This document shows, one piece after another, positions 1-64,000 of a stretch of 64,000 nt of DNA (positions are counted from its first letter, which is position 1; each line of letters opens with the position of its first letter). The notes beneath the pieces were generated by a model that saw only the letters and a list, made by a program, of their open reading frames with translations, made no database searches and was not told the DNA's origin. The stretch is taken from NCBI RefSeq assembly GCF_006345805.1, contig NC_043003.1, forward strand, positions 51,770,001 through 51,834,000, read 5' to 3'. This stretch comes from Octopus sinensis. Its lineage: Eukaryota. The position numbers and the translations under genes are program-made.

Positions 1-239
1 TGAATGAATGAAAAAAATATTTGAATGACGGGAAGCGTGTGAAAGATGGGTGTGAGAAAACGAGTACGATTTAACGTACGCACACACGCATATTTACTCG
101 GAGTTTCCACCAATTCTCTATTTTAAAAGAGAGTTACGTAACCATGTCATCTAAAGAAATGACACAAAAAACAAGCTGAGTAAATTTAACGATACAATAT
201 GTAGAATATGTTTCTTCTGGTCATTATAATTAACGCGAG

Positions 240-241
<2 letters not shown>

Positions 242-311
<70 letters not shown>
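242..311. repeat. (AT)n microsatellite
   Basis: Direct observation; one phase shift at ~281. Confidence 0.97.
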
Positions 312-314
<3 letters not shown>

Positions 315-374
315 TATATATATGTATGTATGTTTTGCTTGTGGCCATTAGGCCGACGAGGCCAGGTTACCAGA

Positions 375-727
375 TAATCGGTCACTGGACTGCGACCATC
401 GTGGAGTACTATTTTGAAGCATTTAGTCGAACAAATCGACCCCAGAACTTTTTTTTTAAAACCTGATCGGCCTCATTTGTCGAGTCTCTGTTGCAGGGAC
501 GTTAACAAACCAAAACCGGTTGTCAAGCGGCGGTGAGGGGCGGGGGCATACAGAAATAAATATACATACGGCGGTCTTCTTTCAGTCTCCGTCTATCAAA
601 TATCACTCACAAACCTTTGGTCGGCCCGGGACTATAGAAGATACTTGCCAAAGGTGCAACGTAGCAGGACTGAACCTGGAACCTTGTGGTTGGAAAACAA
701 GCTTACCACACAGCCACGCATGTGCCT
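375..727 (-). mobile_element. tRNA-derived CORE-type SINE (family A)
   Basis: Reverse complement gives a Pol III head (GGCTGTGTGGT...GGTTCAGTCC), a central CORE-like segment and the tail GGTCGATTTGTTCGACTAA. CpGs are retained. Confidence 0.85.
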
Positions 728-2340
728 ACACACACACACACACACACACACAAGTACATATATGAACAAGTGCGTACGTCTGCTAGATGTCATCTACATA
801 AGTTTAGTACCTCACCACCAACTGTGCGATTGAATAGGCCGGCCTATGATGATTAGAGGCAACAGTTTTTCTCTGAACGGTAATTATCTAATGTGCTTCC
901 CACTTTTTAAGACATTAAGGTATGGTTTGGAGAAGATTTTGGTTATTCTTTCAACGTAGACGCGCACAGAACAGCGACCCAAGAAGGGAGCCTTCATATG
1001 CTTGTCCGACCTTTCAAAAATAGCAGCCAAATTTTCATTCCGTTATTTTTTTACACATTGGATTCTGTAGTCTTGGAAAATAAAATGGCTGGGGGGTTTT
1101 GATCACAGGCCTGATAGATTAGAGCAATTTATGCTCCCTTGGATTCTAGTATAGTTTTTATTTATATTAGGAACATAGAAACTAAACCTTAGTACCTGAC
1201 CAAAATTTTACAGATTCAAGTGTTGCCAAATGAAGAGTGCAGTGATTGTTAAAGTAACTAGTGAATTACCGCAAGACCATGTCAACGAGGAGTACTGTGT
1301 AGAATGTATAATAAATGGACGAGAGAACATTTATAAATTTAATGTGTTATTTTTTTCGTTCTTTCCTTTCTTTCATCTCAACCCTTTCCCTTCAAGCGAG
1401 CCCCACTCCGCCTCGTCTTCAATTGACATTGTAAACTAAGATAGGAAAAGCGTGGTATTATAGAGAGAAACGAGGAGGGACAAGGCAGAGACAGATAGAC
1501 AGATAGATAGATAGTTAGATAGATAGATAGATAGATAAAGAGAGCGAGACAGTGACTATGTTTATTTTGTTGTAGTGATTAGACCGTGATGGAGAAGGAA
1601 ATCTTGTGTGTTCTTTCAGGGAGGTCCTGGGGCAAACTTGAAAGAGAAATCCGTTGAATATATGAAGTTTAGTATGAGAGGAGCAGAAGATGGTGGAAGC
1701 GAAGGATACGGTGGCGATGGTGGTAGCCGGCCTGCTTGATGGTTCTTAGGGCCCAATGGAAGACAGAAGATCGACTTTCAAGTCTAAGCTTACAAAATAT
1801 ATAAGAGTGAAATAGTACGCATGCCATGCGTAAATGTAGTAGTCGTAGTATTATCAGTAACGTAGTGAAAAAAAAGGTTTACTATAAAATAGCGTGCGAG
1901 TATGTACGTAGAAAGATTCTCTCTCACGTGTGTGGCGTAGCTTTTTTTTTCTTCTTTCTTTTTTTTTTTTAACCTCTCCGCCACCACTTACTACATATTC
2001 ACATTCATCTAAGTCCCTTTCCTCCTGACAGAAAACCATAAACCTTGAAAGACCTCTTCACACTGGAGTGTCAATCCGGGGCCAGTTATATATCACAGCA
2101 ACACACATTTCTACGTGTGTGTGTGTGTGTGTATTTTTGTGACTGTATAAATAGCTGCAAGCTCGCATGTCCCTCCCTGTACGTAAACACACTTTCCAAT
2201 GAGTGTGTGTTGAACAAAATGTTAATCCTTTCGTTAATTTCAATGGACCATCGTACACGGCCAGTACTTAAAACCTGAGTTGCTAATGTTTAAATGCGTA
2301 AGATAAACTTCACACCCGAATAAGACGCTAGCCTATCAAT

Positions 2341-2551
2341 CGGGCTGGCAGACTCGTTAGCACGCCGGGCGAAATGCGTAGCCGTATTTCGTCAGCTGTT
2401 ACGTTCTGAGTTCAAATTCCGCCGAGGTCGACTTTGCCTTTCATCCTTTCGGGGTCGATAAATTAAGTACTAGTTACGCCCTGGGGTCGATGTAATCGAC
2501 ATAATCCGTTTGACCCCTCTGTGTTTAGCCCCTTGTGGGCAGTAGTGAAAT
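2341..2551 (+). mobile_element. tRNA-derived SINE (family B)
   Basis: gctggcagactcgttagc A box, gagttcaaattcc B box, central gtcgactttgcctttcatcctttcggggtcgataaa (resembles the Meta-type conserved domain, from memory). Confidence 0.9.
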
Positions 2552-2974
2552 ACATCTTAACTTTTTTCCAATGTTGCATTTTTTTCCTTGTTGGCTTTGT
2601 ACAGTAAACTTTGGGTATTCAAAGACACAAGCCCACGAATTTGAAGAAAGGAATTGGTCAGGCGATCGATATGACTAGCACTTGTGCCAAAATTGGAAAC
2701 CAATATCACTAACACTAGTTATCTTATCTTTTACAAGAAAAAGGATTTGATATTCTTTATAAGGATAATCAAATCAATCCGGTACTTGACGAGTACCGGA
2801 TCGAAGATGAAATTATTTGCTTGTTAAAGACTGATTAATTAGGATTATCATTAAAGTTATTCAAGCTAGAAACGTTTTTTTGTTTCTTTTGCTAGTAGTG
2901 TTTCGAGATAGACCCTTTATTCTGTCTATCTGCCAAGGATACGTCCCAGATAACATTTAACGGAGGAGCCAAGG

Positions 2975-3205
2975 AGGGGGTTTCTACGTGGTCGCTCGAA
3001 TGTTCAGAAATTGCAACCAAATCTACCTGAAATGACACCCTGACGTCTTAAAAATATATTACAATATGTTGGATAATGTAATCCCGGATTCCATGTTTGC
3101 AGGAAGAGAAGCGACGGTGATGGGTTTCACTTGCGGAAAGCCTGTGATCACTTTAATCAGGTTTGTTCAATCAAGGCTGATCTGAGCTCTAAAGAACAAT
3201 AACCA
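2975..3205. repeat. Abundant ~230-bp interspersed repeat (family D)
   Basis: Shares the motifs gctatttctagc, gatcaaaggcattccagc and gacc(t)ggg..aaacaac with about 20 decayed copies (e.g. ~9330, 9600, 9840, 18950, 20000, 22500, 28300, 39200, 42220, 42850, 53410, 53900, 55620, 58500, 61560). Confidence 0.7.
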
Positions 3206-3548
3206 CAGCAACAAGCGATAGGCCAGCGTCATATATCATTCAAGGAGACTACAGGTCTGTGTCGGTAAGGCTTGTATCATTTGGAAAAATCGACAGCAAG
3301 CGTACAGGAAAATTGCTGCGGTGAGTGGAGTATCAAACATTTCAGAGTCCTTTAGGGTCAACATACTGATGATGTTTACATTTTCTCTCCGATTTTGGTA
3401 TGCAAAACTCAAGGATTACTTGGATTACAGGAGTAGATACTAAATATTGTTGATAGGTGATGATATCTAGATTACGTGGGAAGGTTACACTTTAGGTTAC
3501 GTCGTATCAAAGTTAAAGATTACCCGTGTAGAAAACATCTATACTTAC

Positions 3549-3735
3549 ATATCATATAACTTCACTTCGATTTTCGCAGCAGCCATCACAGCCTGTAGGT
3601 GAAGTAACATAGACTCCACACTCAATATATTTAGTCCATTTTCTGGTGTCTGGATAATGACCTCGTACGTTGTACCACTTCCTTCACCTATCGTTTTCCT
3701 TGTATAATCCCGTTCTTTGGACAGACGACCATCTT
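3549..3735 (-). CDS. ptc: Patched coding exon, equivalent to PTCH1 exon 3 (extracellular domain 1)
   Basis: Minus strand tttctctttcatttttatcaacatgcag|AAGATGGTCGT...TATGATAT|gtaagt. Joined in phase 1 to the upstream exon (C+AA = Gln) it gives QDGRLSKERDYTRKTIGEGSGTTYEVIIQTPENGLNILSVESMLLHLQAVMAAAKIEVKLYD plus 2 nt, homologous to Patched GGR...EL.YT..KIGE......Q..IQTP....N.L.....L.HL. Length 187 bp. It is not in the ORF track because it has no start codon. Confidence 0.96.
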
Positions 3736-5154
3736 CTGCATGTTGATAAAAATGAAAGAGAAATCACTTAGTTGGTAAATTATCAGAAATTACAGTAAAG
3801 ATTTCAGAATATAAAGAATAAAAATTATAAATAGCAGAGAGAAACATAGATAGATAGATACATAAAGACAGATAGACAAACAGGCATAGATAGATAGATA
3901 AAGAGATAGATAGATAGGCATATGGAGAAATGACAGACCTACTTTATAAATGTGCCAACAAGACAATCTCTGCACAATCGCCTGGCCTGCAGGAAATGTT
4001 AGCTAGAGCTAAATCTCTTTCAGATCACACCCTACAAATGTGTTCTGCCTTAAAAAAGGGACACACTACATTATGTAGTGTTGGGATGGAATGGTCATGA
4101 TAAGAACATTTTTCAGCTTAGGTCTCATGGATCAAGCCTGATAAAAGAATACCAATTCAGCAACATACACAGCAAAGATCTGGTTTATTTATGGAAATGG
4201 TGTATGTAGTCCACCTCCGCCCCCACCCACCCCGCTAAAATATGAGGATTGGGCAATGTTGCAGTCATATTAATGACATCACTCCAGCATGGCCACATCC
4301 CCCGACTGAAACTACGAAAAGAGTAAATGGTTATATATACGTTCAATCTCTGGAATGTCTTTGACTATATGATCTGCTCAACCAGGGCCAGCCTGGGGCC
4401 AAACAACAACCTAGCAAACCCTTCTATATAACAATCTAGTAGAGAAGATCTCAACAGCCATGGTATAGATTCTACTAACTTCAGGTATTAATTATTTCAC
4501 ACACACACATATTCAGGCAAACTGCTCAATCAGAGCTGATCTTAAGGCTTATACAACAACAACACATGTCTATTCATATTACTTTCTTAGTTAGTTAATC
4601 AACATTACACAGGTAATTAGTCCCAGTTGACATGTACACCAAAGACATCTCTCTCTCTCTCTCTCTGGCATGTGGTTAATGGGTTTGCTTCACAACCACA
4701 TGGTTTTGATCTCAATAACACTGCATGGTGAGTGCCCTTTACCGGAGCCAACCAAAGCTTTGAGAAAGGATTTGTAAGATGGAAGCTTACACACGCAATG
4801 TGTGTGTGTGTGTGGGGCTCTTCTTGTTGCCACTCCTCACCCATTTCCAAACAAATTTATATTCCCTGTAGCCGGACATGTTTTCACAGAAGACCAAAAA
4901 CAGAGGACGTCAATGTAAAAACCAGGAACAAAAACCACAAGGCATTTTTTGTCTGGTAATGCCAATCCCAGAACTATTGAACATGGAAACATCTCATTTC
5001 CTTTCCTTTAACATTGTAGACTTCAGTTCTAATTGGCATTGGGTGTTAAGGAGTTGAGGGTGATAGAGCAATAGCTTTTATGGTAAGACTTGCTGGCTAT
5101 CTTATTATATATTTGTATTGTACTGTTCAGCAAGATATGCAACTCTACATAATC

Positions 5155-6056: not shown

Positions 6057-6271
6057 GGCACAGGCGTGGCTGTGTGGTAAGAAGCTTGCTTCCCAACCAC
6101 ATGGTTTCGGGTTCAGTCCCACTGCTTGGCACTTTGGGCAAGGGTCTTCTACTATAGCCTCAGACCGACTAAAGCCTTGTGAATGGATGTGGTAGACAGA
6201 AACTGAAAGAAGCCCATCAAATTATGATGGGCTTCTTTCAGTTTCTATCTACCACATCCATTCACAAAGAT

Positions 6272-8065: not shown

Positions 8066-8636
8066 CCCTGATGCAGTACCAAGCAGTGGCTCTCATGGCT
8101 TTTGATCTTAACTGATTGGAAGTGTTATCATGTACATTGTTTTGTCTTGGTATAAAAGATGGGCTAACAGCAAATATTCTGTTCAATACCGCAGATTTGC
8201 TTGTCAGCTGCATGACCGTAACCAGTTGAGCATGTCCCTTAGTGGCTGACGATATGTGCAGCTCTGATCATGAGCAGAATCAGTGGGGGGGGGGGGAGCA
8301 TCATAACCATGTGTTGAAAGGAATTCTTTGGGATTTGGATAATTCACTTTTGGAAACATACTTAAAATATCCTTAAACAACCCTTATTCAGGGACCTTTT
8401 GAGCAAGAAGGGCTACTCAATTTGAAGAAAATTCTAACTGGGCCCCCACCTGCAAGGTCTATGAGCTGTTTATCCTGATATAAACTCATTACGTCATGTA
8501 CATTTGGTTGTGATGCATGTGCCTGGTGTACTCTTATCAGACAGATAGTCATGATGGGTATACTGGGCTTCGTATATTTTACCCCAGTGTTACTTTGATG
8601 GCATGCACTGCTCTCTCACTTAATAATAATAATAAT
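8066..8636 (+). mobile_element. LINE 3'-end-like repeat with (AAT)n tail, copy 1
   Basis: About 570 bp shared with 43320-43817, ending ctctctcact(aat)n. Clade not determined. Confidence 0.7.
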
Positions 8637-10289
8637 CCTTTCTGTTATAGGTACAAGGCCTATTATAGGTACTCAGCTGGTACTTAATTTATTGACCCCA
8701 AAATGATAAAATGCAAAGTCAATAATAACCGATATCAATATGGGCAATAAACATAAAATGATAATGATGATGATGATGATGATGATGAATAATGTCAACC
8801 CCAACCCCATCTCCCCCATTGATCAGACTTGAAGTTTTAATTAGGTTTTCGTATTTGCTGTTCTTATAAGTGATCTTACTTTTCTATCTACCTTCTAGTT
8901 AAACAACTGAAGTCACATATTAGGTGGGAGTTGTGGTGGTGGTGATGGTGACAGCAAGGGTTATAAGACATTGCTAAGACGTGAGAGGGAGAGAGGCAGG
9001 TGTGTATGTGTGTGTTCCTTGCTAGCTTCCGGAGCTCTTTGTATGTGAAATAGCCTGGATATCCTTGCTAATGGAAGAGGGGTAAGAGGAGGTATGATAA
9101 GGTGGAGGCTTAGGTCAACAGTATTAAATATTGAGATGTTCCTCTTTTATACAGATCTCCAGTGAAATAAATAAGCTGACCCTTTTTTTTAAAGAAAAAA
9201 CTTGGCCAGTTCTGGGATTTATTGAGTCTTTCTTTATCTCACCTGGTCCTTATATTACCTTCATCAACAAGTAGGGCGTTCAAACTGATCTTATATATCA
9301 GCCAAATGTACATCATTATCATGAGCCATTGTGGGGAGCCTCAATGTGGTCATTTGACTTCCTAGAAATGGCAACCAGATTTCCTTTAAATCACACTGCC
9401 ATACTCAATACAGACAGAACATACTGGATAATGTAATTATGATCTGATATAACCATAAAAAAGCAAATGCATTGGTGATAAGCTAGAATGCCTTTCATCA
9501 TAGGCTGGCTTGATTAGGCCTGTCCTTGGGCAAAAAAGAAATAGACCCACCATGAATCAAGCCTAAGCAACAAGAAGGAAACACTTGTTCAACTTGGTTA
9601 GAAATAGCAGCTGAATGTCTCCAAAGTCAGTTATATCATCTCTTAAGAAAGCAGAGAAATATTTAATAATGTAGTCATATATGCACTATGTCAAGAAAAA
9701 GGTGGAGCAGCCATGGTTGGAATGTCTTATGGTTGAAAGTTAGCTTGATTAATGCTGATATGGGTAAAACACTACCACAAGTCAATAAAGTAACTATTTC
9801 CCCTCTGTTTCAAAGACATTCTACCTACTAGTGGCTAGATTTCCATCAAATTCCATTCTAATATTGTAAAAAAAGATAAGACATGTTTGATAATGTAGTC
9901 CTAGATACAAGATGTCTGGAAAGAAAGAAAGCAATGTGATGGTCATATCTGGAACTTACTTGATCACAAGGTTTCTTAGGTAAAGATCAACCTGAAGTTA
10001 AACAACATGAATCTCACCACTAGTTTGGGATTGTCAGCTTGCAAACAAATTGGTTCATTAGCTTCATTATTTTTTCTTAAAAATTAGCAGCATAATAAAG
10101 ACAAATGATAAAGATATCCCTGTTTCTTACATGGCTACACATTTTGGGAAGGATGTGATTGATGGAATTGACTTTAGTTATAACCACTACCACCACCACT
10201 ACTATCACTAATAACACAACAATACTACCACCATTACATCACTGTTTCATCACCATCACCATTACCAAGTTGAGATCAACAGAGTAATT

Positions 10290-10560
10290 CAGGTTATCAT
10301 AGTAGCTAACCTTCCTATCCTGGATAACACAGTACCAAGCAGTTATTTGTTGCTCCTGCCTGTGAAGTCTCTTCCTGGACAGAGGCACAAGTTGGTTGCA
10401 AGATTAACCACTTGCTGCTGTTGCTGCCACAGCAGGTACTCACTTTCAGCTGAATGAACAAACAGGAGCAATGTGAAGTGAAACACCTTGCTCAACAACA
10501 CAATGTGCAGCTTGATCTGGGAATCAAATCCAAAGCCTTACATTGTAACCAACACCACTG
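10290..10560 (-). mobile_element. Old CORE-like SINE
   Basis: Reverse complement ...gttgagcaaggtgtttcacttcacattgctcc...ttcagctg; degenerate B box at ~10525. Confidence 0.5.
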
Positions 10561-11272
10561 GTGTCTGGGCTGGGGCAAACAGAGATACCGACTAAGACCA
10601 ACACATACATATACACACTTTTGTCATCATGATGTCCTGCTTTCATGCCGGGATGGGTTAAACAGGTTGTTACAATTCAGGCTGGTTCTTGTTGGGAGTT
10701 ATGTTCTACATAAATGTTTTAGTTTTGGCTTTGTTTCTATAACTGGATGCTCTACCTGTCACCAACTATATTTGCACAGTAATCTGACTTCTTTTTCTAG
10801 CATGTCAAGTAACTGCGCAGAAGCTTAACTCGAAAAGAAAATGATAAGTACTGGAGCTGATTTGTTTGACTAAATAAACCCTTTAAGGTGGTGCCCCAGT
10901 ATGGCCACAGTCCAATGACTGTAACAAATAAAAGATATATGCATGTGGTCAGTTGTTTAGAACTATAAGCCTATTATAAGTACTGCAACAACTTTCCTCC
11001 TCTTAATTCAAAATAACCCCTTCCCATTCTTCCATTGCTAATGACAGAACCAGGTTTTGACCTTCAACAAATAAGAGGGAGGCTAACATCTCCAGGGGGA
11101 ACCTTCACCTCCTTCCAGTATGAATTGAATTGTGGTTGTTGATATTTCGATGAATCCTTGAGCAGAACATTCAGCTATTTCAAGGCTGTAAAAACACTTG
11201 CCATATCAACAATACGCAGATTTATCATCACATTTGGAAAAGCCGTTTCTCTCCTCCCCACTGCATTCTCTT

Positions 11273-12630: not shown

Positions 12631-13045
12631 AAACACTCCAAAAAAACTGATGAAAGGGAGTCTTCTTTCATCAGGACAATGTTCCAGCACACAAAGTACT
12701 TGGTTTCAATGGCTGCTGTATGTGAGTGTGGCTTTGAACCTTTGAACTGGTTGACCACCCTTCCTATTCTTCTGACTTAGCCTCATGTGACTATCATCTG
12801 TTTCCCAACATGAAAAAACACTTGGTTGGGAACCAGTATTGCGGTGATTACATTACATCTGCTGCTGATAACGTTTTTGACCAACACGATAAAAGTTTCT
12901 TCACCAATTGGATCCAAGCACTGCAACACCAGAGGAAGACATGTGTGGACTGCAAAGGGGAACCGTGCTGAAAAATAAACTCCATTTGGTCACATTCCAT
13001 GAGAGTATCTTGGTCAGCCTATGAACTTTTCAGCCAACCCTCATA
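12631..13045 (+). mobile_element. Decayed mariner transposon, 3' end
   Basis: Frameshifted HQDNVPAH...LVDHPSYSSDLASCDYHLFPNMKKHL (mariner HDNA..H and HPPYSPDLAPSD motifs). It ends in a TIR-like aacttttcagccaaccctc-ata. Confidence 0.85.
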
Positions 13046-14084
13046 AAGAGTGGACAATTATAAGATTGATATAGTCATGCACATGTGGCTTCATGTAGTC
13101 CTGTGATTGAAACCAGTAAAAGAATATTGCACTGAAATACAACTCTCCTCATATGCAAAGTAGAACCTTCTTTCATTATAATTTTATGTCAAAATTGTTC
13201 AAGTTATAATGTTCCAAACATTAGCTTAATAAGTGTTTCAAATTTTGGCACAAGGCTATCAATTTTAGTAGAAAGGAATCAGATGCTAAACTGGTACACA
13301 TTTTATCGACCCTGAAAAGATGAAAGGCAAGTTGACCCCCGTGAAATTTTGAACTCCGATGTAAAGAACTGGAAGAAATGCCATTCAGCATTTTCTCTCA
13401 GTGTGCTAATGATTCTGTCAGCTCCCTGCCTTCAGTTTTAGGTGGCAAATTGGCAGAAGCATTAGTGGCAGACAAAACGTCTTATGCTATTTATTTCAGC
13501 TCTTTCAATTTGAATTCAATTCCTGCAAAGGTCAGAGGTAGCATTTATCTTTTAGGGGTTGATAAGTAAAGAACCAATAAAGTATCAAGCAGGATGCAAT
13601 GCATTGTGGGATTTGTTCCAGCTCTTTTTGTGTTCTGAATTCAAATCTTCCTGCAGCAAGAGTGGTAGACTTAATGACCCTCCACCCTTAACATTGCAAG
13701 ACTCTTTAGCAAAGTTCACTCTTATTAAAAATATTCTAGCTAGGTCTACAGTTTGAAGACATGTTCCTTCTTCACCACCAACCATCTTAGAGGCTCTGGA
13801 AAGGTCACTGTCCTTTCCACTTGATTAAGCAATAAACAAGCATTTTCTACTATAGCCCTGGGCTGACCACAGATTTGTGAGGGAATCTGATGGACAAAAA
13901 CTGTGTGGAAACCTACAGTGTATATATGTGCACATCTGTGTGGGTGTGTTGCTTTAGTTATGGCCCATAACTTAGCAGTTTAGCAATAGAAACCATTAGA
14001 ATAAGTATCACACTCAAAAACATAAGCACTGGGGTTTAAAAGATATGAACATTGTATTTTCTTTTTAATATATATGTCATGTAA

Positions 14085-51319: not shown

Positions 51320-51742
51320 TATTTCTTTTACTACCCACAAGGGGCTAAACACAGGGAGGACAAACAAGGACAGACAAACGGATTAAGTCGATATCGATCC
51401 CCAGTGCGTAACTGGTATTTAATTTATCGACCCCGAAAGGATGAAAGGCAAAGTCGATCTCGGCGGAATTTGAACTCAGAACGTAGCGGCAGACGAAATA
51501 CCTATTTCTTTACTACCCACAAGGGGCTAAGCTAATCACAGAGGGGACAAACAAGGACAGACACGCGGATTAAGTCGATTATATCGACCCTAGTGCGGAA
51601 CTGGTATCTAATTTATCGACCCCGAAAGGATGAAAGGCAAAGTCGACCTCGGTGGAATTTGAACTCAGAACGTAGCGGCAGACGAAATACTGCTAAGCAT
51701 TTCGCCCGGTGTGCTAACGTTTCTGCCAGCTCGCCGCCTTAA
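51320..51742 (-). mobile_element. Family B SINE head-to-tail dimer with 14-bp TSD
   Basis: TSD atttgtttacaata at 51306-51319 and 51743-51756; internal junction at ~51501. Confidence 0.92.
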
Positions 51743-54700
51743 ATTTGTTTACAATACACACACACACACACACAAACATATTTATTTATACATACATATC
51801 ACAGTAAATTAATATTTGCGCGAAGAAAAATACAGATACTCGTGAATAACTATTTTCTTTACAATAATAATTTCTTTGAATTTAATAATAATGTATAAGG
51901 AATAATTGTTGTTGACCCTGGCACGATTTGAACTCAGAACATAAAAAGACAATTAAAAAAACAATGCATTTTGCTCGTTGCTTCACTATAAATAGAATCA
52001 ACACCCTGCAAAAAGTTTTCAACAATTTCGGACTTATACTTTTCTCTATACAAAACAAATTTTAGCTTTATTGGCAGGCAGTGATTTCATTTAAAACTTA
52101 TAACAACAAAAAAATATCATACTAAAATTGAAGAGACTAAAGATTTTACATTGTTCTATCTAAATTGACAGGAGAAGAATTATGCTTTAAAATGAGATGA
52201 AATTCAATGAAAATTTTTTTTTTTTACGAAACAGCGGCGTTAAATTTCCGTGTTTTCGGAGTTTTGGAAGTTGTGTTTTCGTTAACTGAAGAGTGCTACT
52301 TCCTTTAAGACATCATTAATTTGTAATGAAACGCGAAAGATGGTTAGATAGAAGGGAGATAACTCTACAAACACAACTAGAAAGTTTCATGTTGATGTAT
52401 TCTAACTCTAGCTTGTATCCGACGGGGACAAACAGACTTATAATGGAAGAGACTAAGAGCCATGACAGAAGAAAAGTTATTTCTGAACTGTTGAGCGACT
52501 ATAGCACACATTACATATTGATAAACAAAACGGGGGATAATGATTGCACGAATAAATATTAGTATAATCATCATCACCTAAAATATTCGTATTATTTACA
52601 TTATTTAAGCGCGCGTACACACATACACAGAAACGGAATGTTGTAGAAATTTAAAAAACAAAAACAAAGAACGATGGTGGTGTTGGGGATGAGGACAATA
52701 ATTAAAGTACGCTTAACATCCAACAGATTGGAGATCTAAATCTAAAGAATGGTTGAGCTGAGAAAGTGTACTATATTATGAGAGCAGATATAAAATTTAC
52801 GCTTTATCGGAATTCTGTTGACCTCAGCACTCGACTGGTACTTTATTTAGTCAACCCCAGAAAGATCGAAGTTGATTTGAGAAAATAAATGGCCATAAAT
52901 ACCGGAAGGCACTTTTGTTCCCGCTCTCTCGTCTCTACCACTTCGCTATCTAATAAATGAGAAATATCAAAAGATGTCGCAGCAGAGAGTAGCTATGTTT
53001 CAAAATAACTAATCCAAGGATTGACCCAAAATAAGTTAACGGCTAATAAAAAGCAATGATGCTATTTATGGCTCCTAAATATTGAGGGTTTATGAAATAA
53101 CGGTGCTTTAGTTGTGCTTGGTTTCGGTTGTCTCACGCTAAAGCAGACGCGTGGATATAAAACGAATTAGTCAATCGAAAGTACATTTCTCCAACCAGAT
53201 GATTTGGTGTTTATATCATGATAGCTAAAGTATAAAGTGCTCTACACAGAAAACATATCAAAACTAATATCGAAGCTCACACGTTAGTGGGTATTTTCTT
53301 GGTGTAACGAACCCTGAAATTAACGTATAAAATGTTTAACAGTCTTTTCCAAAATTAATATTTTTAGTTCCTCTTTTACGTCCAGCATCACTATCATCGC
53401 TACTCACTGAGCATGACTGCTCGACATGCTAGAAATAACAGCTATATCCCACTCTCTTAACAAATAACGTTGATGAACTGGATACTCCTAAAAAGAGTGG
53501 ATGGCCTCGATTACAATGCATTTGGTTATAGGTCCGCTCCATTAGGAATGACCAGGAATTAAACAACAACAATAGTAACATCTATATTTATAAGTTCCCA
53601 CCTATGTAAACATTGGTTGACCTGTATCTACGAGAGGGAGCCACTATGCGGTTTTCGACCAGTAGAAAATGATAGCGAAATCCCCTCAGAATACACCCGA
53701 CTATCTTAAACCCGTGTGTCCTGTTTTTTTAAGGACTCATGAAATAATATACTCCGTGATACACTATGGTAAAAAAAAAAAAAAAAAGACGACTGGTTGC
53801 GGCTGGTACGTCTTTGATTATGACTGTTGAACCAGAGGCTGACCTGGCCAAAAAACAATGTAATAAAAGAGAAATCGAGAAGGGCTCTATGTTGTTGATC
53901 GACCTGCTAGAAATAGCAGTCGAATTTCCCTCAATTTATATCCCCCACACCACCAAGAAAAAAGAAAACTAAAAGACGAGAAAAAGCTAAGGACACATTA
54001 TGTTTAAAAAACGAAAAGGCAAGTTGGAATGCTTTTGAATTTAGATCTGTTGGATCACGGCTAACCCAGAGTTAAAACAACTACAAATCTAAATATATCT
54101 ATACCAAATGTAAACATTCAATGACCTATATTATCCAATATCAATTTTTCGTATTCAGACTTAAAATTATTTCCTCCAACATATTCACATTCTCAAGAAA
54201 GGTGTCATCTTATTTTGTTTTTTCGCCACCGTTTCTACAAAATTAGATAATAAACAGAAAATTCCACTCTACATAATAATACTAATACTGATAATAATAA
54301 AAGGTGGTTTCCATTTCAACATTCCTTCCAACCAACAACAACCTAACCAATAATATATCTCTCTTCTTGTGTTGTAGGTTAAGGACCACCAGGATGAATA
54401 GAAAACAGCTGTATTTGACAAGAATGTTAAAGCAATAAGGAATAATACCTACGATAAGTTAGTTAAGTGAGTTTATAACTATACTGTTCACATTGGTAAA
54501 ATTCTTCCCTAACCCTAAACTAAGTTTTAATTAGGCATGAAGATTTTTTTTTCCTAGGAGTGAGAGGTGGGGGTGAATGGATAGGAAAATGCTTTAAAGT
54601 ATTTTTTTTTTTCTGTTGTGGTTCAGTCAGAGGTTGTAAAGTAACAACCATGACCACTTTTTGCAGAACCTATGAATCTGAAGGTAGAAAAGTAGATAGA

Positions 54701-56599
54701 TAGACAGATATTATTATCCTTGGATCAAAGGCCTGGTTCAAATGCTTGAAACAAAGTGAACTTCACTAAATGCAGTCAAGGGTTAAATTGAATGGCCATC
54801 ATTTCTTTCCAATTAATACATTAAAACTTGCTTTAAGCAATAAGTGGAATGCAAGCCATGGTTTAATACATTGGCCACTACTTCGATTTGACCTCACACG
54901 TTGGTTTAACATAGCCGACAGCTATCCAGATCTCATTTTGTCTTACTCAAAATGCTGAGTTGGTGAAAAGTTTGTATTCAAGCAATGTGGAGAAATTGTG
55001 ATACATTGTTTATAGAAATGAGAGAGAGAGAGAGATTTCCTAAGCAATGAAAACTTTTCAGGGCTGATACGTAATTTTGGCTTCCAGATTAAGATGATAT
55101 ATTATTGCAAGTAAAATTTCCATAGTAGGACAAACTACAGGCTTCTGATTAACTGCGAGCTAAAATAAATATTATACCCTTAAGTTTGGAGTGAAGGAAC
55201 TACTATAAATTGCTAAGTCCATGCCATTACAGAAAGGAGCAAATAGAGCAGATATAAACCAATGGAAGAACCTCAACATCTGAGGTGGGAAAACCCTTGC
55301 TTCGAAGCAAAATTTTGGAAAAATTCTAATTTGAAGCCACCCACTGATAAAGTAAGTCTCTAATAACCCGTGGGGAAAAGAAATAAAACAGTTTAAACCA
55401 CAAGATCTAAATAGTAATTTAATTTTTTTAATAGTAATTTAATATAAGTAATTTAATACGTTAGTTACATACCTATAAATTAACGAAGTTAAATATCCAT
55501 TATCTCTCTTACCACAGTTGCACCCCCACAGGTTCTTATGCAATTGCCTTTTTTACTAAAAAGGGTTCCTCACCATTCCTGGTTTGCACAGTTGCTCAAA
55601 TTATTGGAAATAGCAGCCAAATCTTTCACAAATCATGCAGACTACGTCGTAAGAAAAAGACACCTTTGATCAAAGTGTTCCAACTATGACAGCCCCACCT
55701 TATTTTTAGACAATATCCAATGTGCCTTCCCGTTTTCAAGATGAGGTGTGCTTTCATGGGAATCTGGTAGCTTGTTCTGGCAGGTTGAACAACTATAGGT
55801 TTGTTAACACTAGACATTAGCTATGGTTGTCAATCTGCAGTTTGATGATGGTTCCTTATGTCGACACGAAAGGCACAAATTTGCAAGGCCTCCGCAGCAA
55901 CAAAAGATAACTTTTAATGCCAAAATGTAAAATGAAAAAAAAAATAAATAAATAAAAATAAGGTATATATTTAGCCCAGCGATCTGTCTCCTCATCTTTA
56001 TAAGCAGCAATTTTCTAAGTAGCACATTTATGCATTTCCCTAAATAGATTTATCTGATTGAAATGATGTTTACAAATACGAGGTGATCCAGCATGACCAC
56101 AGCCGAATGACTGAAACTAGTAAAAGCGAATGGCTTGCTTACATTGGAACATTTTCTATGTTGGGGATGGGGTATAGTTAATAGAACCGATTCAAGTGTA
56201 TTTATGTTATAACTGGTTACTTATTTCTATAGGGAAGTATTCGGAAATGAATAGAGGTACGACTGATTTTGGCATTCAACAAAATATTTGTAATACCAAC
56301 TTAAATCAATTTTCTTAAATGTTTTACTTAAAAAAAAAAAAGAGAAATTAAAACTGAACTGCAATAAATCACAATTAGGGAGGACAAATTAATTATGTAA
56401 AAAAAAAAAAGCTTTAAAATTTTTAAAATGAAACTAAGATATAAAATATTCCCCGTTGCTATCTTGGAAAGTTTGAAAATCGTAAAAATGTAAAAGAATA
56501 TGATGGTGGTAAGAGTAAAGAGACAAGAGTGAAGTGAAGAGATGTTTCCTTTTCTCTCCCTTCCTCTCAGATTTTATAGGATGTAGTGGTAGAGTCAGG

Positions 56600-56760
56600 C
56601 ACACACAAAAGTATGTCGGTGGAGTGACTGTGCCAAAAATACCAGACCACACACGCGTTCATTGAATTACACCATTTCTGGGTCACGGGCCAAGATGGCG
56701 GGTAGCACTTCCTTTTTTTGTTTCCAGTGACAAGCAAATAATAGTAGTGTGTGTAGGTAT
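56600..56760 (+). promoter_or_regulatory. Motif cluster: Gli variant, ACGCGT, YY1/Pho and ETS
   Basis: GACCACACA 56645-56653, ACGCGT 56653-56658, CAAGATGGCGG 56691-56701 and CACTTCC 56706-56712, all in non-repeat sequence. Confidence 0.4.
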
Positions 56761-58073
56761 GTGAGAATCTGTGTGTACGGCTATAGAAGAGTATGTGCGT
56801 GCGCCTGTGTGTGGAGTTTTGTTATGTGGATGCATATAGTGTGGACGTGTATAATGAGGGTGTGTGTTTACGAGTGTGTAAGATGCCTTTCAGAACGTGT
56901 CAGTTATATGTACATGTATATATGAGTATGTATGTGTAAGCCAAAACTAGAAAGGTCCCAACGCGCATTTCATTGAAACTTGAGGAAATTAAGATTTACT
57001 TTTTTATACTCAGTGTTTATATTTATGTTTTTGTTGTATTTTTTTATCACGTTTTATAAGGAGGGACGGTGGTGGATTTAAAGTTTTGTTTTTGTTTATG
57101 TTACGTCTAAGAAAAAAAATTTAAATGTATAAAGAATCCGTTGATTTAAAAAAAATTATTTTGTAATAATAGTAATAATGCTACTATACATTATAAAAAC
57201 CAATTTTAGGCAGAAAAGAGAAAACAGGCCGAAATTTTGTATCAAATTGGCTCTTATGTGTAATATCATTTTACGTTGAAAATCTTAGTTAATTCATTCA
57301 TAATGTGCGTGTGTGCGTCTCTCTCTATTTCACCCTCTCTTTATATGTACTATTCTTCTACTAAGAAGGTCAATTTTGTAGAGATGCGAAGAGTCCAAAG
57401 CATGTACAAGGCATCAGATTTGAATGGGTGGGAGAACAGTCAGTTGAAACGACTTCTCTACCCAGTATTCGATTTAACAGGTACTTTATTTTATCGACAC
57501 CGGAAAGTTGACTGGCAAAGCAATCTAAACGTACAAGAGATGCCGCGAAATGCTACGTTTTACCAATTCTATCATCCAGTCATTTTTTCTTTTTCTTTTT
57601 TTTTTATGCCCTAAAATATAATGCCTAATAATTCTTACTAATATTGGTATAACGCCAGCAATTTTGAGAGGAAGAAGTCGATTACTTTGACTCCAGTGGT
57701 ACGTACCTATTCTAGTGACCCCTAAAGGATGAAAGGCAAAGTCGAACTCGGCGGAATTTGCCTATAATGACTAATAGTACTTATCTGAATCGAACCTCAA
57801 ATGATAAATACAATGAAATTAAAAGCTTTAACCTCACTAGGGTCTGAACTCATCTGAGTAGGATAAACAGCTAAATTCCAAGCAAGCCGTTTATTCAAAT
57901 GCCATTTGATGCATCGATCGTAAAGGTTCTATATTTGTCAGGGTGGAAGGAATAGGAGTATGTTTACGGTTTTTTCATATTCATTAGTTTCTGATGAGCA
58001 ATAGGCCACATTTTAAAACCACTAACATATACCGGGGCGTGTGATTTATTTTTTTAATTTATTCGATACTATA

Positions 58074-58210
58074 GGCGCAGGCGTGGCTGTGTGGTAAGAA
58101 GCTTGCTTCCTAACTACATGGTTCCGGGTTCAGTCCCGCTGTGGGGCACCTCGGACGGATCAAAGCCTTGTGAGTGGATTTGGTAGACGGAAATTGAAAG
58201 AAGCCTATCG

Positions 58211-58262
<52 letters not shown>

Positions 58263-58432
58263 CGTGCGTCTCTGTGTTTGACCCCGTCTCCATCACTTGA
58301 CAACTGACGGTTGTGTGTTATGTCTCAGTAGAGACTGATAGAATAAATACTGGGGTCGATTTCTTCGACTAAAATCCTTTAAGGCGATGTTCCAGCATGG
58401 CCTCGGGCAAATGACTGAAACGCGTAAAAGAA
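58074..58432 (+). mobile_element. Family A SINE, CpG-retaining, CORE segment deleted
   Basis: ggcgcaggcgtggctgtgtggtaag head; cacctcggac joins directly to caaagcc. Confidence 0.9.
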
Positions 58433-58795
58433 CACGGTACTGGATTGCTGTATGAGAGAGGGCTGGAAAGATAAGATGAATTGTTATCAATGGTATTTAG
58501 CCACAGATCAGCTCCGACTGAACAGATTTATAATCAAAAGCAATTTAGCCAGAATCATTCCTTTGTCCTTCTCTCGAGTATTGATTATCGAGGACTAAAA
58601 TTACACAGTGTAAGCCCCTTGCTTTTAAGACAGTAATGGTGTAACTGGCCAAGGGGTGGGGTCTGCTTCCAGGCCAGGCGACCACATAGAATTATTCTTG
58701 TTGGGTATTGTAAAAAGAAAATTTGAAGGGTGTAAAATAGCAGAGACGACGGAAAAGAAGTGTTTTTATTTTTTAAGATGTATTCGGATACTTAC

Positions 58796-58988
58796 GCTCA
58801 ACCCAGAGCTGTTCAACGTTGGTTTCTAACGTGCCTGTTTTCAAACCGAAGCAAAACAAAGAGAGCAGCAGTAATCCAAGGAAAAGAACTTTGCCATAAT
58901 GAAGTTGGATAAAACAGCCAACGCTGAAAAGTTGTTTCTGTAGGTGACATCGCACCCACAGAGCACATGTGTTTCCATTAGATTTACC
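58796..58988 (-). CDS. ptc: Patched (Hedgehog receptor) internal coding exon, equivalent to PTCH1 exon 2 (TM1 and start of extracellular domain 1)
   Basis: Minus strand reads (T/C)n-cag|GGTAAATCT...TGGGTTGAGC|gtaagt. It translates GKSNGNTCALWVRCHLQKQLFSVGCFIQLHYGKVLFLGLLLLSLFCFGLKTGTLETNVEQLWVE plus 1 nt, matching the Patched GK..G...LW.R..Q..LF..GC.IQ...GK.L..GL......GLK...LETNVE.LWVE signature. Length 193 bp, phase 0 in and phase 1 out, as I recall for human PTCH1 exon 2. Confidence 0.97.
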
Positions 58989-59519
58989 CTGAAAGAAAGA
59001 AAAAAAAAAGAAAAATACTTAGAAAAATATATTATATATAAAAATTCAATTATATTTCCAAATTTTCATTGTTAACAATTTTCTAATAATAAATACAGTA
59101 TTGATTATATTTTGATAAATAAAATTAAATAAGGCTTATAAGTAAAACAAAATCCTATGTCATAGGATGTTGGAGGCTCTTCTTCCCGCCAGCCCTCACC
59201 TGTTTTCAAGCAAGGTGCTATTTCTAACATGGCTGGACATGTCTCACGGGGACGTTCATTTTGTATCTATGGCGTGATGTCAAGACAAGGAGACACACGA
59301 ATACACAAATATACGTATGTCATTCATTTCCCATATTCTGCGAAAACATGTTTGGCTGAGGGGAATTAACACCCAGCTTGGAAATGAGTGGAGGTTGACA
59401 ACAGGAAAAGCATCCGAGGCCGTAGAAAAGTTGCATCGATAAACTCTGTCCAACTCGCGCAAGCATGGAAAAGTGGACATTAAAATGATGATGATGATTT
59501 ACATATTCATTTTCCATTA

Positions 59520-59656
59520 ACCATATCTACTCTCAAGCTTTGGGCGACTCAAGGCTACAATAGAAGACACTTGTCCAAAGCGTCACACAGTGGGACTGAA
59601 CCTGAAACCACAAGGTTGGGAAGTGAAATTCTTAATCACAAAGTCATGTTTGCGTT
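59520..59656 (-). mobile_element. Family A SINE, head fragment
   Basis: gaagacacttgtccaa...gtgggactgaacctgaaacc is the reverse complement of the head/CORE region. Confidence 0.8.
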
Positions 59657-60390
59657 TATATATACCTTTCGAGTGTAGTTATGCTATTTTTAAAAAAATC
59701 AATCGTATCGACTCTAGCCTTTACTTTATCGATCTCTAATTACGCCCAACTGAATTACGTTCCTTTTGGAGACGGAAACACAACAAAGTAATACACTAGT
59801 GCACCCACACAACAATTTTACATACTGTCTACACTCAAGAGAGTTCCTTCAGCTGTCAACGAGAACATAATTTCGTCACCTTCCAACAATACCCCCGCCA
59901 CTAATGCCAAGTAGCATTGATGCTACAAGGTTATTTTGCTCCACACTGTAGTACATTTATCTACACAAGTTGGATGCAGCTGGAACAACTCCAATTAAGC
60001 AAGCAACCATTTTGTTTTATTTTTCGCTCAGGATTGTTGAGCTCCTCTGCTTATCACATGCCTCAACCATGACCATGTCGAAGCATTTTCTTCTTTCCTC
60101 TCCAATTCACGAATCAGTGTACAGGTGTTCTTAAGGCCAACGCCAGCCAGCTAAGACATAGTGAATCATTGTGTATCTGACCAGTGACATCCCACCTTTC
60201 TAGAAGCACCAAACATTTCCACCCTCGTGCCTCGCACGATCCATTAAGTCTTGTGTGTGTGTGGTGTGTGTGTGTGTGTGTGCGTTAGGCTCTTCTTTCA
60301 TGTGCCCATTCTATGGGTGGAGTCAAGTCATCAATTAAATTTCTTTTTCTTTTGTCAAATCAGACCAAGCCATAAAGCTAGGACTTTGTT

Positions 60391-60557
60391 GTTGTTTGTT
60401 CCTTCTCGAGTCACGCCTGGCTCATAAGCGCCGGTTTCCCGGTTTCCTTGGCGTATAGGTTCCCCACCTAGACGGGACGCCGGTCCGTTGCAGGTGAGCT
60501 GCATGATGCAGGAGGAAAGAGTAAGAGAAAGTTGTGGTGAAAGAGTCAACAGAAGTT
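60391..60557 (-). mobile_element. V-domain-like SINE fragment
   Basis: Reverse complement cctgcaacggaccggcgtcccgtctagg resembles the V-SINE motif CCCTGCGATGGACTGGCGTCCCGTCCAGG (from memory). Confidence 0.55.
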
Positions 60558-60768
60558 TATTCAGCTGAATACACGTCATTGATTGGTGGAAATTACCGAA
60601 ATACGACAACTTTAACACGAAATAACTTCGTATATAGAAACTTTTCTCAACAACACTAAGAGTAAAAGATGTTTTATATGACGCATTCTACCAGTGTCCG
60701 AAGTTTGAAAGTGTTTAGTTACAAAAAATTAATTTCCCCATCTGCCATTGAAAGGGGAAAAGATCCCT
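60557..60768. mobile_element. MITE-like fragment
   Basis: Ends in aagggaaaaagatccc-ta; recalled as an octopus interspersed repeat; only one end is visible. Confidence 0.35.
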
Positions 60769-60859
60769 AGCCCCTATACTCAAACTCTTCAATCTCTCCC
60801 CGCTCCCCCTCCTCTGCCTCCAGGGAACTATCCTAACTTTTAGAAACACGCAACCACAT

Positions 60860-61400
60860 ATCCTATTCCCAATGAAAGCAATCTCTCTTTGGCCTTATCA
60901 ACTATCGGCCCATTGCACTCACTTCCAATATCTCATATGTAACAGAGACAGTTATTAACCAAGACGTCCTCTCAACAACTCGAATCTTTTCCTCCCTCAT
61001 CTTAATGACCACCAGTACGATTTCAGTATAACTATAAGTCGCCTTAAATTGGAAGAATTTGGTGTAAGTAATGTTGTGGCCTATGACGTCTGGTATTCAA
61101 ATCTGCCGCATGTTGACGGAGTTTTTCTGTTGTCCCTCATTCTATCAACTCTGGCGTGTCCCATATTTATCCTCTGTCTCTTTTGCGTCCCATATTTTGC
61201 GTGTCCCATATTTATCCTCTGTCTCTTTTGCGTCTGTACATCAATAACTTACCGCTACATCCAACAATATGCTGTCGTACTCAGATAACATAATTCATTC
61301 TTATCTATATATTTTCCAGCCATGTACCAAGCCATTCGCACACACTGACTCCAAGATCAGAGACCTAGCAATCAAATCTAAAACGATAGATCAAAGTATG
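60860..61400 (+). mobile_element. Decayed CR1/Jockey-type LINE reverse-transcriptase fragment
   Basis: Frameshifted motifs in the expected order: PIP...NYRPIALTS, FGVSNVVAYD (cf. FGE..VVALD), INSGV (cf. GVPQG) and YSDN (cf. YADD). Confidence 0.7.
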
Positions 61401-62024
61401 CAATGTCTTACGAAAATTAAGCGATTGCCTACTGTGACACTCATAAGAGGAAATATCAACAGTCAGTAAATGATAAAGTGCTGTTTCGATGAACATACTC
61501 TGCATACCAACGAAAGCACCTCAGTCAATTAGAATCTCTTCGTGATGCTCACCTGTAAGAAATAGCAGCAAATTTTCCCTCCAATCAGCCTTAGTTACCA
61601 TCTTGAATAGGAAAGGCCATACTAGATAACGCAGTCCTAGGCGTATCACTTAAAAGAAAGTGTTTTTTTTATGTATTCATTTATTTATTTATATTTATTC
61701 ATTTGAATTTTAACGAATTCTTTGCCAGATTTTCAGCTCGCTACGTTCTGAGGTGAAATCTCGCAGATGCGAACTTTCTTTCAATTATGTCTTCGGGATC
61801 GATGGTATTCGACTAAAACCTCTTCTTATAAAATTGCTGGTTTTGTAGTTAAATCAGAAATCATTTAGCTATTGCAGACAGCCACTAATTCATTTGATTG
61901 TGTTTAACTCTTGCTTTCAATCCACAGAGAGATATGAACTTTAAGGTAAGTTCGTTCTGCGAGCCTACGAAATTTTAAGCTGCATGGAGCTGAGTCAGAC
62001 TTTTATAAAATAATAATAATCCTG

Positions 62025-62609
62025 TCTTATGGAGGCATAAAGCCTGAAATTTGGGGGAAGGGATTAAATCGATTACATCGACCCCAGTACTCAACTGGTA
62101 CTTATTTAATCGACTTCGAAAGGATGAAAGGCAAATCGACTTCGGCGGAATTTGAATTGAGAACGTAAAGCCGCAAAGCAGTTTGCCCGGCGTGCTAACG
62201 ATTCTGCCAGCTCGTCACCTTAATAATAATGATGATGATGATGATGATGATAATTTTTCCACAAAGGCAGCTTGGGGGAGGTGAGGATGAGTCGATTACA
62301 TCGATCCCAGTGTTCAACGGATACTTATTTTATCGACCTCGAAAGGATGAAAGGCAAAGTCGACGTCGGCGGAATTTGAATTCAAAACGGAGCGACGGGC
62401 GAAATACCTATTTCTTTACTACCCACAACGGGCTAAACACAGAGGGGACAAACAAGGACAGACAAACGGATTAAGTCGATTATATCGACCTCAGTGCGTA
62501 ACTGGTACTTATTTAATCGACCCCGGCGGAATTTGAACCCAGAACGTAGCAGCAGACGAAATACTGCTAAGCATTTAGCCCGGCGTGTTAAGGATTCTAC
62601 CAGCTCGCC

Positions 62610-62610
<1 letters not shown>
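62025..62610 (-). mobile_element. Cluster of three family B SINE units
   Basis: Units at ~62025-62222, ~62257-62407 and ~62408-62610; the last has a microhomology deletion at ~62520. Confidence 0.85.

Positions 62611-62665
<55 letters not shown>
62610..62665. repeat. (ATT)n microsatellite
   Basis: Direct observation; a similar tract lies at 63304-63360. Confidence 0.95.
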
Positions 62666-62671
<6 letters not shown>

Positions 62672-62773
62672 TGTGTGTATTTAGTTAACGAATAACAAAA
62701 GAACAGGAATTACCTAATCACCTTCATTAGCTTAAGGCATAAGTGAATTCTAACAACTGTTTATTAGTATCGC

Positions 62774-62804
<31 letters not shown>

Positions 62805-63313
62805 AAAGAGATTGAGGAGGAAGTGAAGCGAGGTGTGTGTATATGTGTGTGTAATATTCATGCTTTTTCCGAGGTTTAAGTAAGCAAAGTAAAATGACTT
62901 TGACCGACGATGAAAATCAGTCGGTACAATCTTGCTAAGTAGGTTTGCACATGATTCTGAAAACGTTTCTCCTTTGGGTCCTTTCCGTCAGCTATATTTC
63001 ATTAAGACGGTTGACTAAAGTAATTACAGTAAAATCCGGAATACGAGAAACTGATGATGGCTCTGCGTCGGCAACAATTACACCATAGGAGAGTTCATAG
63101 AAGAGTTCGGTAAGTTCATTTGCTGTGATTATACAGTAATTACGGATGCAAGTTTAGAATGAAACACATTTTCTAGAAATTAATGAGTACACGCACGCAC
63201 ATATTTACTTATACAAACACATATATAGATGACAGCACACAAACCCGCATAACGCTCCAACAGAATAAGAACATAGGAAAATGGAGACGTGGAGAAGACA
63301 CAAATTATTATTA

Positions 63314-63363
<50 letters not shown>

Positions 63364-63699
63364 GGGTGGAGTCCATATGTTTTGCTACACTTGGCTAGCA
63401 AATATATATAAAGTTACACAAAGTCACTGTTAAATGTTTGCGTTTTATAACTTTATAAAACCATTGGCAATAAATATTGTAAATTAGACATAGCAAGAGC
63501 TAAACACACACAATGAAAAAACCACCACCTAAGCACCAACTTTTAAGTCCACGCAAATATGAATAAATAATACGTGAAAATGTGTATATTTAAAAGTTAT
63601 TTTGATGCTTATATAGGGCTTAAAATATATATTTATGTACTTTATATGGTTTTAATGTATAAATCACCTTGTGATGCACGTGTGTGTGTGTGTGGGGGG

Positions 63700-64000
63700 G
63701 ATTCAGACGAACATATTCCGCTGGATGTGTAATGTCAACATGCATGAACGATGGAGCACATTTGAGATGGGGGGGAGTATAAGAGGAATCAGCTGTAGTG
63801 TGCACGAGAGAAGATTGCGCTGGTACGAACATGTGGTACGTTTGAAGGATAACAGTTGTGTAAAAAGTGTTTCAAGCAACCCAGTATAAAGGAGATTGCA
63901 GAAGAGGAAGATCGTTAAAGATGTTGGAAGGTGTGGTGAAATTTGATCTCAGGAAGGCGAAGTCAAGACTACTACGAGTGACAAGATGCTGGGAAAAAAA
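63700..64000 (+). mobile_element. RTE-clade LINE fragment
   Basis: Peptide FRWMCNV...ERRLRWYEHVVRL matches the RTE LRWMCG...ERRLRWYGHV.R motif. It runs off the window. Confidence 0.75.

Follow-up and report, generated by a model that had tools for sequence, protein, structure and literature searches.

Alternating CpG-rich and CpG-depleted domains in intron 2 of the Patched gene of Octopus sinensis: a putative record of germline methylation

The DNA considered here, called the window, is a stretch of 64,000 nucleotides from Octopus sinensis (assembly GCF_006345805.1, contig NC_043003.1, positions 51,770,001 to 51,834,000 of the forward strand), and it lies within the gene for Patched. Long stretches with an ordinary content of CpG alternate in it with stretches from which most CpG has been lost, and the depleted DNA occupies the greater part of one very long intron. 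The pattern has the features of a mutational footprint of 5-methylcytosine (5mC) in the germline, and it probably reflects methylation of the body of Patched itself.

The Patched locus and its CpG domains

Two pieces of open reading frames (ORFs) on the minus strand matched Patched; when joined, they corresponded to residues 82–183 of a PTCH1 structure in the PDB with E = 1.4e-24. The match spans the first transmembrane segment (TM1) and reaches into the beginning of extracellular domain 1, and the exon boundaries are conserved: exon 2 of human PTCH1 also comprises 193 nt, and an exon 3 of 187 nt is found as well on a contig of another animal (L001, 2456–2642). Identity to the Mytilus counterparts was 69% for exon 2 and 52% for exon 3. 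From the splice sites, which were read directly, a length of 55,060 bp was obtained for intron 2, compared to 8.3 kb in Mytilus (contig L002, exons at 10530–10727 and about 19120–19309). The window runs from the last part of intron 1 over exons 2 and 3, with the entire intron 2 between them, to 3.5 kb into intron 3. A motif search between 59 and 64 kb found no exon 1, and a PDB screen detected no further exon in 1–3545. The DNA is CpG-rich in exon 2 and for 5 kb or more upstream of it; exon 1 and the promoter are situated beyond the window.

A two-state hidden Markov model (HMM), applied to the property "C followed by G", divided the 64 kb into seven main segments, which were alternately CpG-rich (H1 to H4) and CpG-poor (L1 to L3; Table 1). 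Comparison of the seven-segment model with a single rate gave a likelihood ratio test (LRT) value of 627, and the lag-1 autocorrelation of CpG per C in bins of 500 bp was 0.70, the maximum among permutations being 0.31. Change-points were placed at 3726 (support interval 3711–3835), 24943 (24866–25474), 27790 (27682–28209) and 51375 (50939–51389); the intervals span about 0.1–1.0 kb, with a 2-lnL interval given for the left border. There are thus at least six switches of state in 64 kb, inside one gene and indeed inside one intron. The depleted block, which consists of the arms L1 and L2 with the island H2 between them, takes up 47 kb in the interior of intron 2, whose first 7.8 kb are undepleted. 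Two short CpG-rich patches and young CpG-bearing insertions are present within L2. At the left border, the last dense CpG is located at 3726, i.e., 9 bp inside exon 3, and the next CpG follows only at 3979; exon 3 itself contains 7 CpG, with an observed/expected ratio (o/e) of 0.95. For any of six borders to fall by chance no more than 100 bp from any of four exon edges, the probability is about 7%, and a non-chance link between this border and the exon-3 acceptor is suggestive, not compelling.

An initial annotation, made from the letters of the sequence, had described CpG-rich and CpG-poor domains inside one gene, with a left transition close to the acceptor of exon 3. Counts per kb, the HMM and the LRT showed that the domains are real and strong, and the hand counts given at that time (2 CpG in 18001–19000 and 31 in 53041–54000) were reproduced exactly. 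The single gene is Patched, whose exons 2 and 3 flank the depleted block, and the left transition turned out to be sharper than had been claimed, as seen from its support interval.

The contrast concerns CpG and not base composition in general. The G+C content was 0.34–0.43 throughout (0.36–0.43 in rich and 0.34–0.38 in poor domains), i.e., flat at about 0.38, and the o/e of GpC was normal in every domain (0.85–1.04). For TpG/CpA, o/e values over whole domains were 1.3–1.4 in poor DNA (1.34–1.41 in L1) versus 1.0–1.1 in rich DNA, and this surplus matches the deficit of CpG in order of magnitude. Masking was applied to all hits to short interspersed elements (SINEs; nhmmer), to tandem repeats and to every self-similar segment, which amounted to 22 kb in total. 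A sliding comparison after masking had been proposed with the initial annotation as a check; the profile was not flat, and the domain contrast survived in unique DNA, with CpG o/e of 0.11–0.25 in the depleted arms versus 0.6–1.0 in rich domains. The o/e of TpG/CpA in unique DNA was 1.33–1.34 in depleted domains, 1.05–1.13 in H1, H3 and H4, and 1.22 in H2.

Table 1. Patched exons, CpG domains and other elements in the window (CpG o/e is given for whole segments and for unique DNA after masking)
Feature	Position	Strand	Description
Patched exon 2	58988–58796	-	193 nt, encodes TM1; acceptor ...ctttcag, donor gtaagt
Patched exon 3	3735–3549	-	187 nt; acceptor AG at 3737–3736, donor gtaagt from 3548
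H1	1–3726 (HMM 29–3726)		CpG-undepleted; o/e 0.93, unique DNA 0.88; contains exon 3 together with 3.5 kb or more of intron 3; reaches past window edge
L1	3727–25310 (HMM 3729–25310)		CpG-depleted arm, 21.6 kb; o/e 0.13, unique DNA 0.11
H2	25311–27790 (HMM 25316–27790)		Internal island, 2.5 kb; o/e 0.74, unique DNA 0.59; G+C 0.43
L2	27791–50982 (HMM 27802–50982)		CpG-depleted arm, 23.2 kb; o/e about 0.17–0.28, unique DNA 0.25
H3	50983–54058		CpG-undepleted; o/e 1.04, unique DNA 0.98; distal part of 5' domain, within intron 2
L3	54059–55855 (HMM 54061–55855)		Partly depleted patch of 1.8 kb inside 5' domain; o/e 0.31, unique DNA 0.31
H4	55856–64000 (HMM 55862–63989)		CpG-undepleted; o/e 0.86, unique DNA 0.75; contains exon 2, preceded by 3' part of intron 1 and followed by first part of intron 2; reaches past window edge
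Mariner transposase, C-terminal relic	12738–12968	+	Matches SETMAR/Mos1 structures, E = 8e-5
LINE reverse transcriptase tail (second)	17780–18103	+	Recognised by eye only
Tandem duplication	34939–36779 and 36752–38591 (34939–38591)		1.84 kb, 99.6% identity; two substitutions, few indels; within L2
LINE reverse transcriptase, C-terminal ORF	40454–41212	-	253 aa open, CpG o/e 0.69; identity by eye, without confirmation by Pfam and PDB
Minisatellite	44583–44781		63 bp x 3.2, 92% matches; CpG-rich
hAT-like dimerisation tail	46530–46889	-	Recognised by eye only

SINE copies as clocks of CpG loss

Since copies of the same SINE families are present in rich and in poor domains, the loss of CpG could be compared with the age of the copies. 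Family A was scored as two modules, one for each half, and family B as a third. Copies were gathered by iterated profile searches, ancestral CpG sites were deduced from columns reading CG, TG or CA, and each copy was scored for CpG retention and for divergence over all remaining columns. The 16 copies in rich domains had kept 110 of 196 ancestral CpGs (0.56), where 0.67 would be expected if CpG had decayed like other sites. In poor domains, 35 copies had kept 30 of 394 (0.08), and the lost sites read TG (143) or CA (130). Divergence outside CpG sites was equal, with 0.180 in rich versus 0.192 in poor domains (Mann-Whitney p = 0.31), and for copies matched at 13–21% divergence retention was 0.60 and 0.07, respectively. 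In a logistic model, the effect of the domain after fitting of divergence was highly significant (LRT chi2 = 128, p = 1e-29).

Because divergence is equal and CpG retention is not, the age of the SINEs is not the explanation. The initial annotation had allowed for a contribution of SINE age, a caveat which can be dropped, since the domain effect holds at equal divergence; its proposal to compare CpG and non-CpG divergence copy by copy led to the result that CpG loss is not explained by divergence alone. The sequence variants of family A which it had pointed out were located: GACGGAAA is present at 58186 in a rich domain, and GACAGAAA at 5280 and 6195 as well as GCCCATC at 5297 and 6212 are present in a poor one.

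The oldest copies in rich domains (28–29% diverged) retain 31–50% of their CpGs, and copies in poor domains which are just 6–10% diverged have already lost 45–100%. Old copies with CpGs in rich DNA and young copies without them in poor DNA indicate that both states are long-lived and also recent. The same trend was seen in the individual segments. In H1, SINE copies keep 12/17 and 7/10 of the ancestral CpGs; in L1 mostly 0–9% are kept, with 3/12 in the youngest copy (6061–6217). A copy of family B in the island H2 (26194–26390) has 12/16 CpGs at a non-CpG divergence of 14.7%, and copies in L2 keep 0–17%, the youngest excepted. Near 51 kb, three copies of family B follow each other with 0/14 (50531–50710), 8/11 (51350–51502) and 11/18 CpGs kept (51537–51736); the change from 0/14 to 8/11 between neighbouring copies implies that this border is narrower than 640 bp.

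The decayed CpG sites of SINEs in L2 were biased with respect to strand, with TG 111 versus CA 68 on the plus strand (p = 0.0016). Those in L1 were unbiased (TG 47 versus CA 47).

Taken together, the marks expected of a footprint of germline 5mC deamination are present: a deficit of CpG, flat GpC and G+C, a reciprocal surplus of TpG/CpA, and decay in the repeat copies.

Several other elements were noted in the intron (Table 1). The tandem duplication in L2 is very recent; with two substitutions only, it is uninformative as a clock of ongoing CpG decay. Each duplicate carries one exact match to the Gli-binding consensus GACCACCCA (at 35774 and 37586), and these are the only exact matches in the window. 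Gli sites were not enriched in the rich domains; with up to 1 mismatch, 20 sites were found versus 11.4 expected. The ORF of a long interspersed element (LINE) at 40454–41212 is read as a young insertion which has not yet decayed, and the 63-bp minisatellite accounts for the CpG-rich patch at 44558–45137 in L2. A protein search with the LINE ORF gave no hits. The SINE, which is derived from a tRNA, and the wealth of microsatellites would agree with a cephalopod origin of the DNA. Two more repeats are confined to depleted DNA and fell outside the CpG-retention test, i.e., a pair of 550 bp with 80% identity (8105–8648 and 43319–43830) and a family of about 200 bp with four copies (14072–14284, 31016–31227, 44759–44956 and 48612–48810).

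Probable gene-body methylation of Patched and other explanations

The reading of the domains as a fossil record of germline methylation, which had been put forward in the initial annotation, is well supported by the loss of CpG with gain of TpG/CpA, by the flat GpC and G+C, and by the agreement between unique DNA and repeats. Poor domains would have been CpG-methylated in the germline over a very long time, and rich domains would have been kept unmethylated. Since 5mC deaminates to T, a methylated CpG should change to TpG or CpA several-fold faster than other sites (about 6-fold in the pooled data); unmethylated CpGs should decay at a rate near the background, and SINEs which landed in either type of domain would have recorded the local state. 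The rich domains are just undecayed DNA, in what is probably the state that invertebrate genomes have by default.

For the depleted block, the explanation which appears most probable (about 0.6) is gene-body methylation of Patched behind an unmethylated 5' domain. This 5' domain would consist of exon 2 with the end of intron 1 before it and 7.8 kb of intron 2 after it, and would be followed by a methylated intron; the methylated part would be broken by the unmethylated island of 2.5 kb and would end at exon 3, with at least 3.7 kb of unmethylated DNA beyond. We infer that the mark was 5mC. It could have been laid down by targeting coupled to transcription, by the route from trimethylated lysine 36 of histone H3 (H3K36me3) to DNMT3 which is known in other animals, and bound regulators, H3K4 methylation or Polycomb may have protected the islands from it.

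Patched genes of other animals were compared for this question. With a peptide profile of exons 2 and 3, ORFs of Patched exons were retrieved from other animals' contigs, and seven places were fetched. In Mytilus galloprovincialis, a CpG-rich island of 2.2 kb (o/e 0.97) spans Patched exons 1 and 2; from 11038, i.e., 300 bp past the end of exon 2 (10727), the DNA is CpG-poor (about 0.21) as far as the contig extends, exon 3 included. Contig L003 similarly has an island over exons 1 and 2, is CpG-poor from 10832, about 600 bp past the end of exon 2 (10216), and possesses small intragenic islands too. Contig L001 is poorer in CpG upstream of exon 3 than downstream (0.26 versus 0.50, p = 0.003). 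An end with unmethylated appearance on the 5' side, followed by a depleted intron 2, is therefore found at Patched also in Mytilus and L003, and this recurrence favours methylation of the gene body of Patched itself. In L005, L008 and L009, which contain Patched exon 2, CpG o/e was 1.1–1.5 over many kb and thus above random expectation; the species from which these contigs originate are apparently without methylation at Patched.

Several points weigh against this reading. Gene-body methylation normally extends to the 3' end of a gene; in the window, the CpG-rich state is back at exon 3, with an o/e of 0.93 over exon 3 and 3.5 kb, and continues to the window edge. The rest of Patched lies beyond the window, so that of the downstream gene only exon 3 and 3.5 kb are visible. 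Exon 3 of Mytilus, unlike that of the window, is situated in depleted DNA. Among the other contigs, L004, L006 and L007 were moderately depleted without a step, and L005, L008 and L009 were CpG-rich throughout. The consensus of the SINEs, like its CpG sites, was derived from the copies in the window itself. Finally, Patched is a gene of developmental signalling, a class which is often unmethylated in invertebrates (PMC10936051).

The return of the CpG-rich state could be explained differently, if the block consisted of one or two germline-active units nested in intron 2, for example a long non-coding RNA, a lineage-specific gene or a cluster of the piRNA type, with gene-body methylation of their own; the island would then be a promoter, possibly a bidirectional one, and Patched would be unmethylated. 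This arrangement would account for the undepleted state of both exons and their surroundings, and for the halt of depletion at the exon-3 acceptor without continuation. Weak indications in its favour are the almost equal lengths of the arms (21.6 versus 23.2 kb, or 21.4 kb after subtraction of the recent duplication), which could be a coincidence, and the strand bias of SINE decay in the right arm (TG 111 versus CA 68, p = 0.0016). The left-arm SINEs do not share this bias, and in the unique DNA of either arm no TpG/CpA strand asymmetry was present; GC and AT skews, taken as a clue to the direction of transcription, were small and inconsistent. In addition, every ORF piece of 35 aa or more within the block was screened, on both strands, against the PDB, with the Patched exons as positive control. 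The sole match was a mariner relic of 77 aa, and no conserved host exon was detected on either strand, non-coding or lineage-specific units being outside the reach of this screen. A screen of the same class of ORF pieces (at least 35 aa) with Pfam yielded nothing and is void, since its control missed true Patched exons and relics of transposable elements (TEs); being blind to real Patched exons, its negative result carries no weight. Scans of the window with Rfam and for tRNAs yielded nothing. A lineage-specific unit would also not predict the depleted Patched intron 2 of Mytilus and L003, and nested units, which might still be considered, seem rather unlikely.

It is less probable again, and on the whole improbable, that the block represents a silenced, heterochromatic or TE-defence domain, which was methylated independently of transcription, or a past state which is no longer methylated. 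Relics of TEs (mariner, and by eye a hAT-like element and LINEs) and many SINEs are indeed present within the block, and octopus intergenic repeats were found to be slightly more methylated than repeat-free intergenic DNA (PMC9476566). But octopus TEs are reported to be essentially unmethylated (PMC9476566), the same SINE families are unmethylated, judging from their footprint, in rich domains, and within the block the depletion of unique DNA is no weaker than that of the repeats. The youngest SINEs in the block, with most of their CpGs gone, argue against a state which ended long ago.

That the contrast reflects repeat content, SINE age, base composition or a recent arrival of CpG-rich segments and not methylation is very improbable, since, in spite of the more repeat-rich right arm (47% masked) and the young elements which make up its two small CpG-rich patches, the contrast holds in unique DNA with flat G+C and GpC, CpG retention differs 8-fold at equal non-CpG divergence of the SINEs, and the rich domains hold SINEs diverged by up to 29% with CpGs and are hence not young. 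The arms have only dispersed repeats in common and are without the terminal repeats of a giant element, which was rejected as an origin of the block.

Some claims of the initial annotation require revision. It had regarded the exons as protected; they are not protected individually, but are located in broad undepleted domains (minimum sizes 3.7 kb and 13 kb), which include introns and SINEs. Its comparison with hypomethylated regulatory domains of vertebrates is partly misframed and at most conjectural, the rich domains not being islands of high G+C. Its premise that invertebrate methylation is a mark of whole genes is dated for this group of animals, as Octopus bimaculoides has been described to possess genes whose promoter or first third is unmethylated (PMC9476566).

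Relation to known methylation systems and significance

In sperm of Ciona intestinalis, methylation forms long, sharp, all-or-none domains over transcription units and is the same as in somatic cells, and the reading of germline methylation from CpG o/e was established in this animal (PMC3827831). The window resembles Ciona in its long and sharp domains, in repeats which adopt the state of their domain, and perhaps in unmethylated promoters or 5' ends. It differs in that Ciona genes are almost wholly methylated or wholly unmethylated (PMC3827831), whereas the gene in the window would contain both states.

In O. bimaculoides, fewer than 10% of the CpGs carry methylation; they are found within the bodies of some of the genes, are not targeted to TEs, and are alike across tissues (PMC9476566). 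Four patterns of genes were distinguished, including MP2 with an unmethylated promoter and MP3 with an unmethylated first third (PMC9476566). An unmethylated promoter or first third with a methylated body beyond, the lack of targeting to TEs, and a pattern fixed across tissues would agree with the window, and the tissue-invariant pattern of octopus fits a footprint which is stable over evolutionary time. MP2 and MP3, however, are metagene averages, which show neither a return at a downstream exon nor internal islands on the scale of kb.

In sea urchin and lancelet, regulatory elements free of methylation were reported from within the methylated bodies of genes, as were developmental genes which are hypomethylated (PMC10936051). 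The likeness consists in elements without methylation, or demethylated, within methylated bodies of developmental genes, many of which lie in hypomethylated valleys. The animals are deuterostomes, though, and their elements are mostly of the size of peaks in assays for transposase-accessible chromatin (ATAC), dynamic during development, and defined by 5mC and 5-hydroxymethylcytosine; the islands in the window extend from 2.5 kb to at least 13 kb and were recognised from a mutational footprint. The similarity to CpG islands and methylation valleys of vertebrates consists in an o/e near 1 which stands out from depleted surroundings, in the 5' part of a developmental gene. Unlike in CpG islands, G+C in the rich domains of the window is not raised (0.36–0.43 versus 0.37), and the undepleted state is probably the default of the genome.

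Sharp mosaic domains, footprints in CpG o/e and partly methylated genes are thus already documented, and the locus confirms known rules and does not change them. Specific to the locus are the exact return of the CpG-rich state at the exon-3 acceptor and the island of 2.5 kb. It could tentatively be proposed that the CpG-rich stretches are constitutively protected regulatory valleys in the methylated body of a developmental gene of a protostome, which would have been unmethylated since the insertion of the oldest SINEs, with one border tied to the exon-3 acceptor; this proposal is rather unlikely to hold in full. If it were true, boundaries of methylation in invertebrates would be set by local elements or by exon definition, and not by the extent of transcription.

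SINEs of the same families and of the same age, on either side of borders of less than 1 kb, provide a compact natural experiment. Their comparison allows the acceleration of CpG loss by germline methylation to be estimated directly, with a value of at least about 6-fold here, and points to a methylation map which was stable across the whole era of these SINEs. Should the islands prove to be regulatory, Patched would become a test case in cephalopods for the way in which unmethylated regions are kept clear in methylated gene bodies, and could also show whether exon boundaries help to set the borders of the domains.

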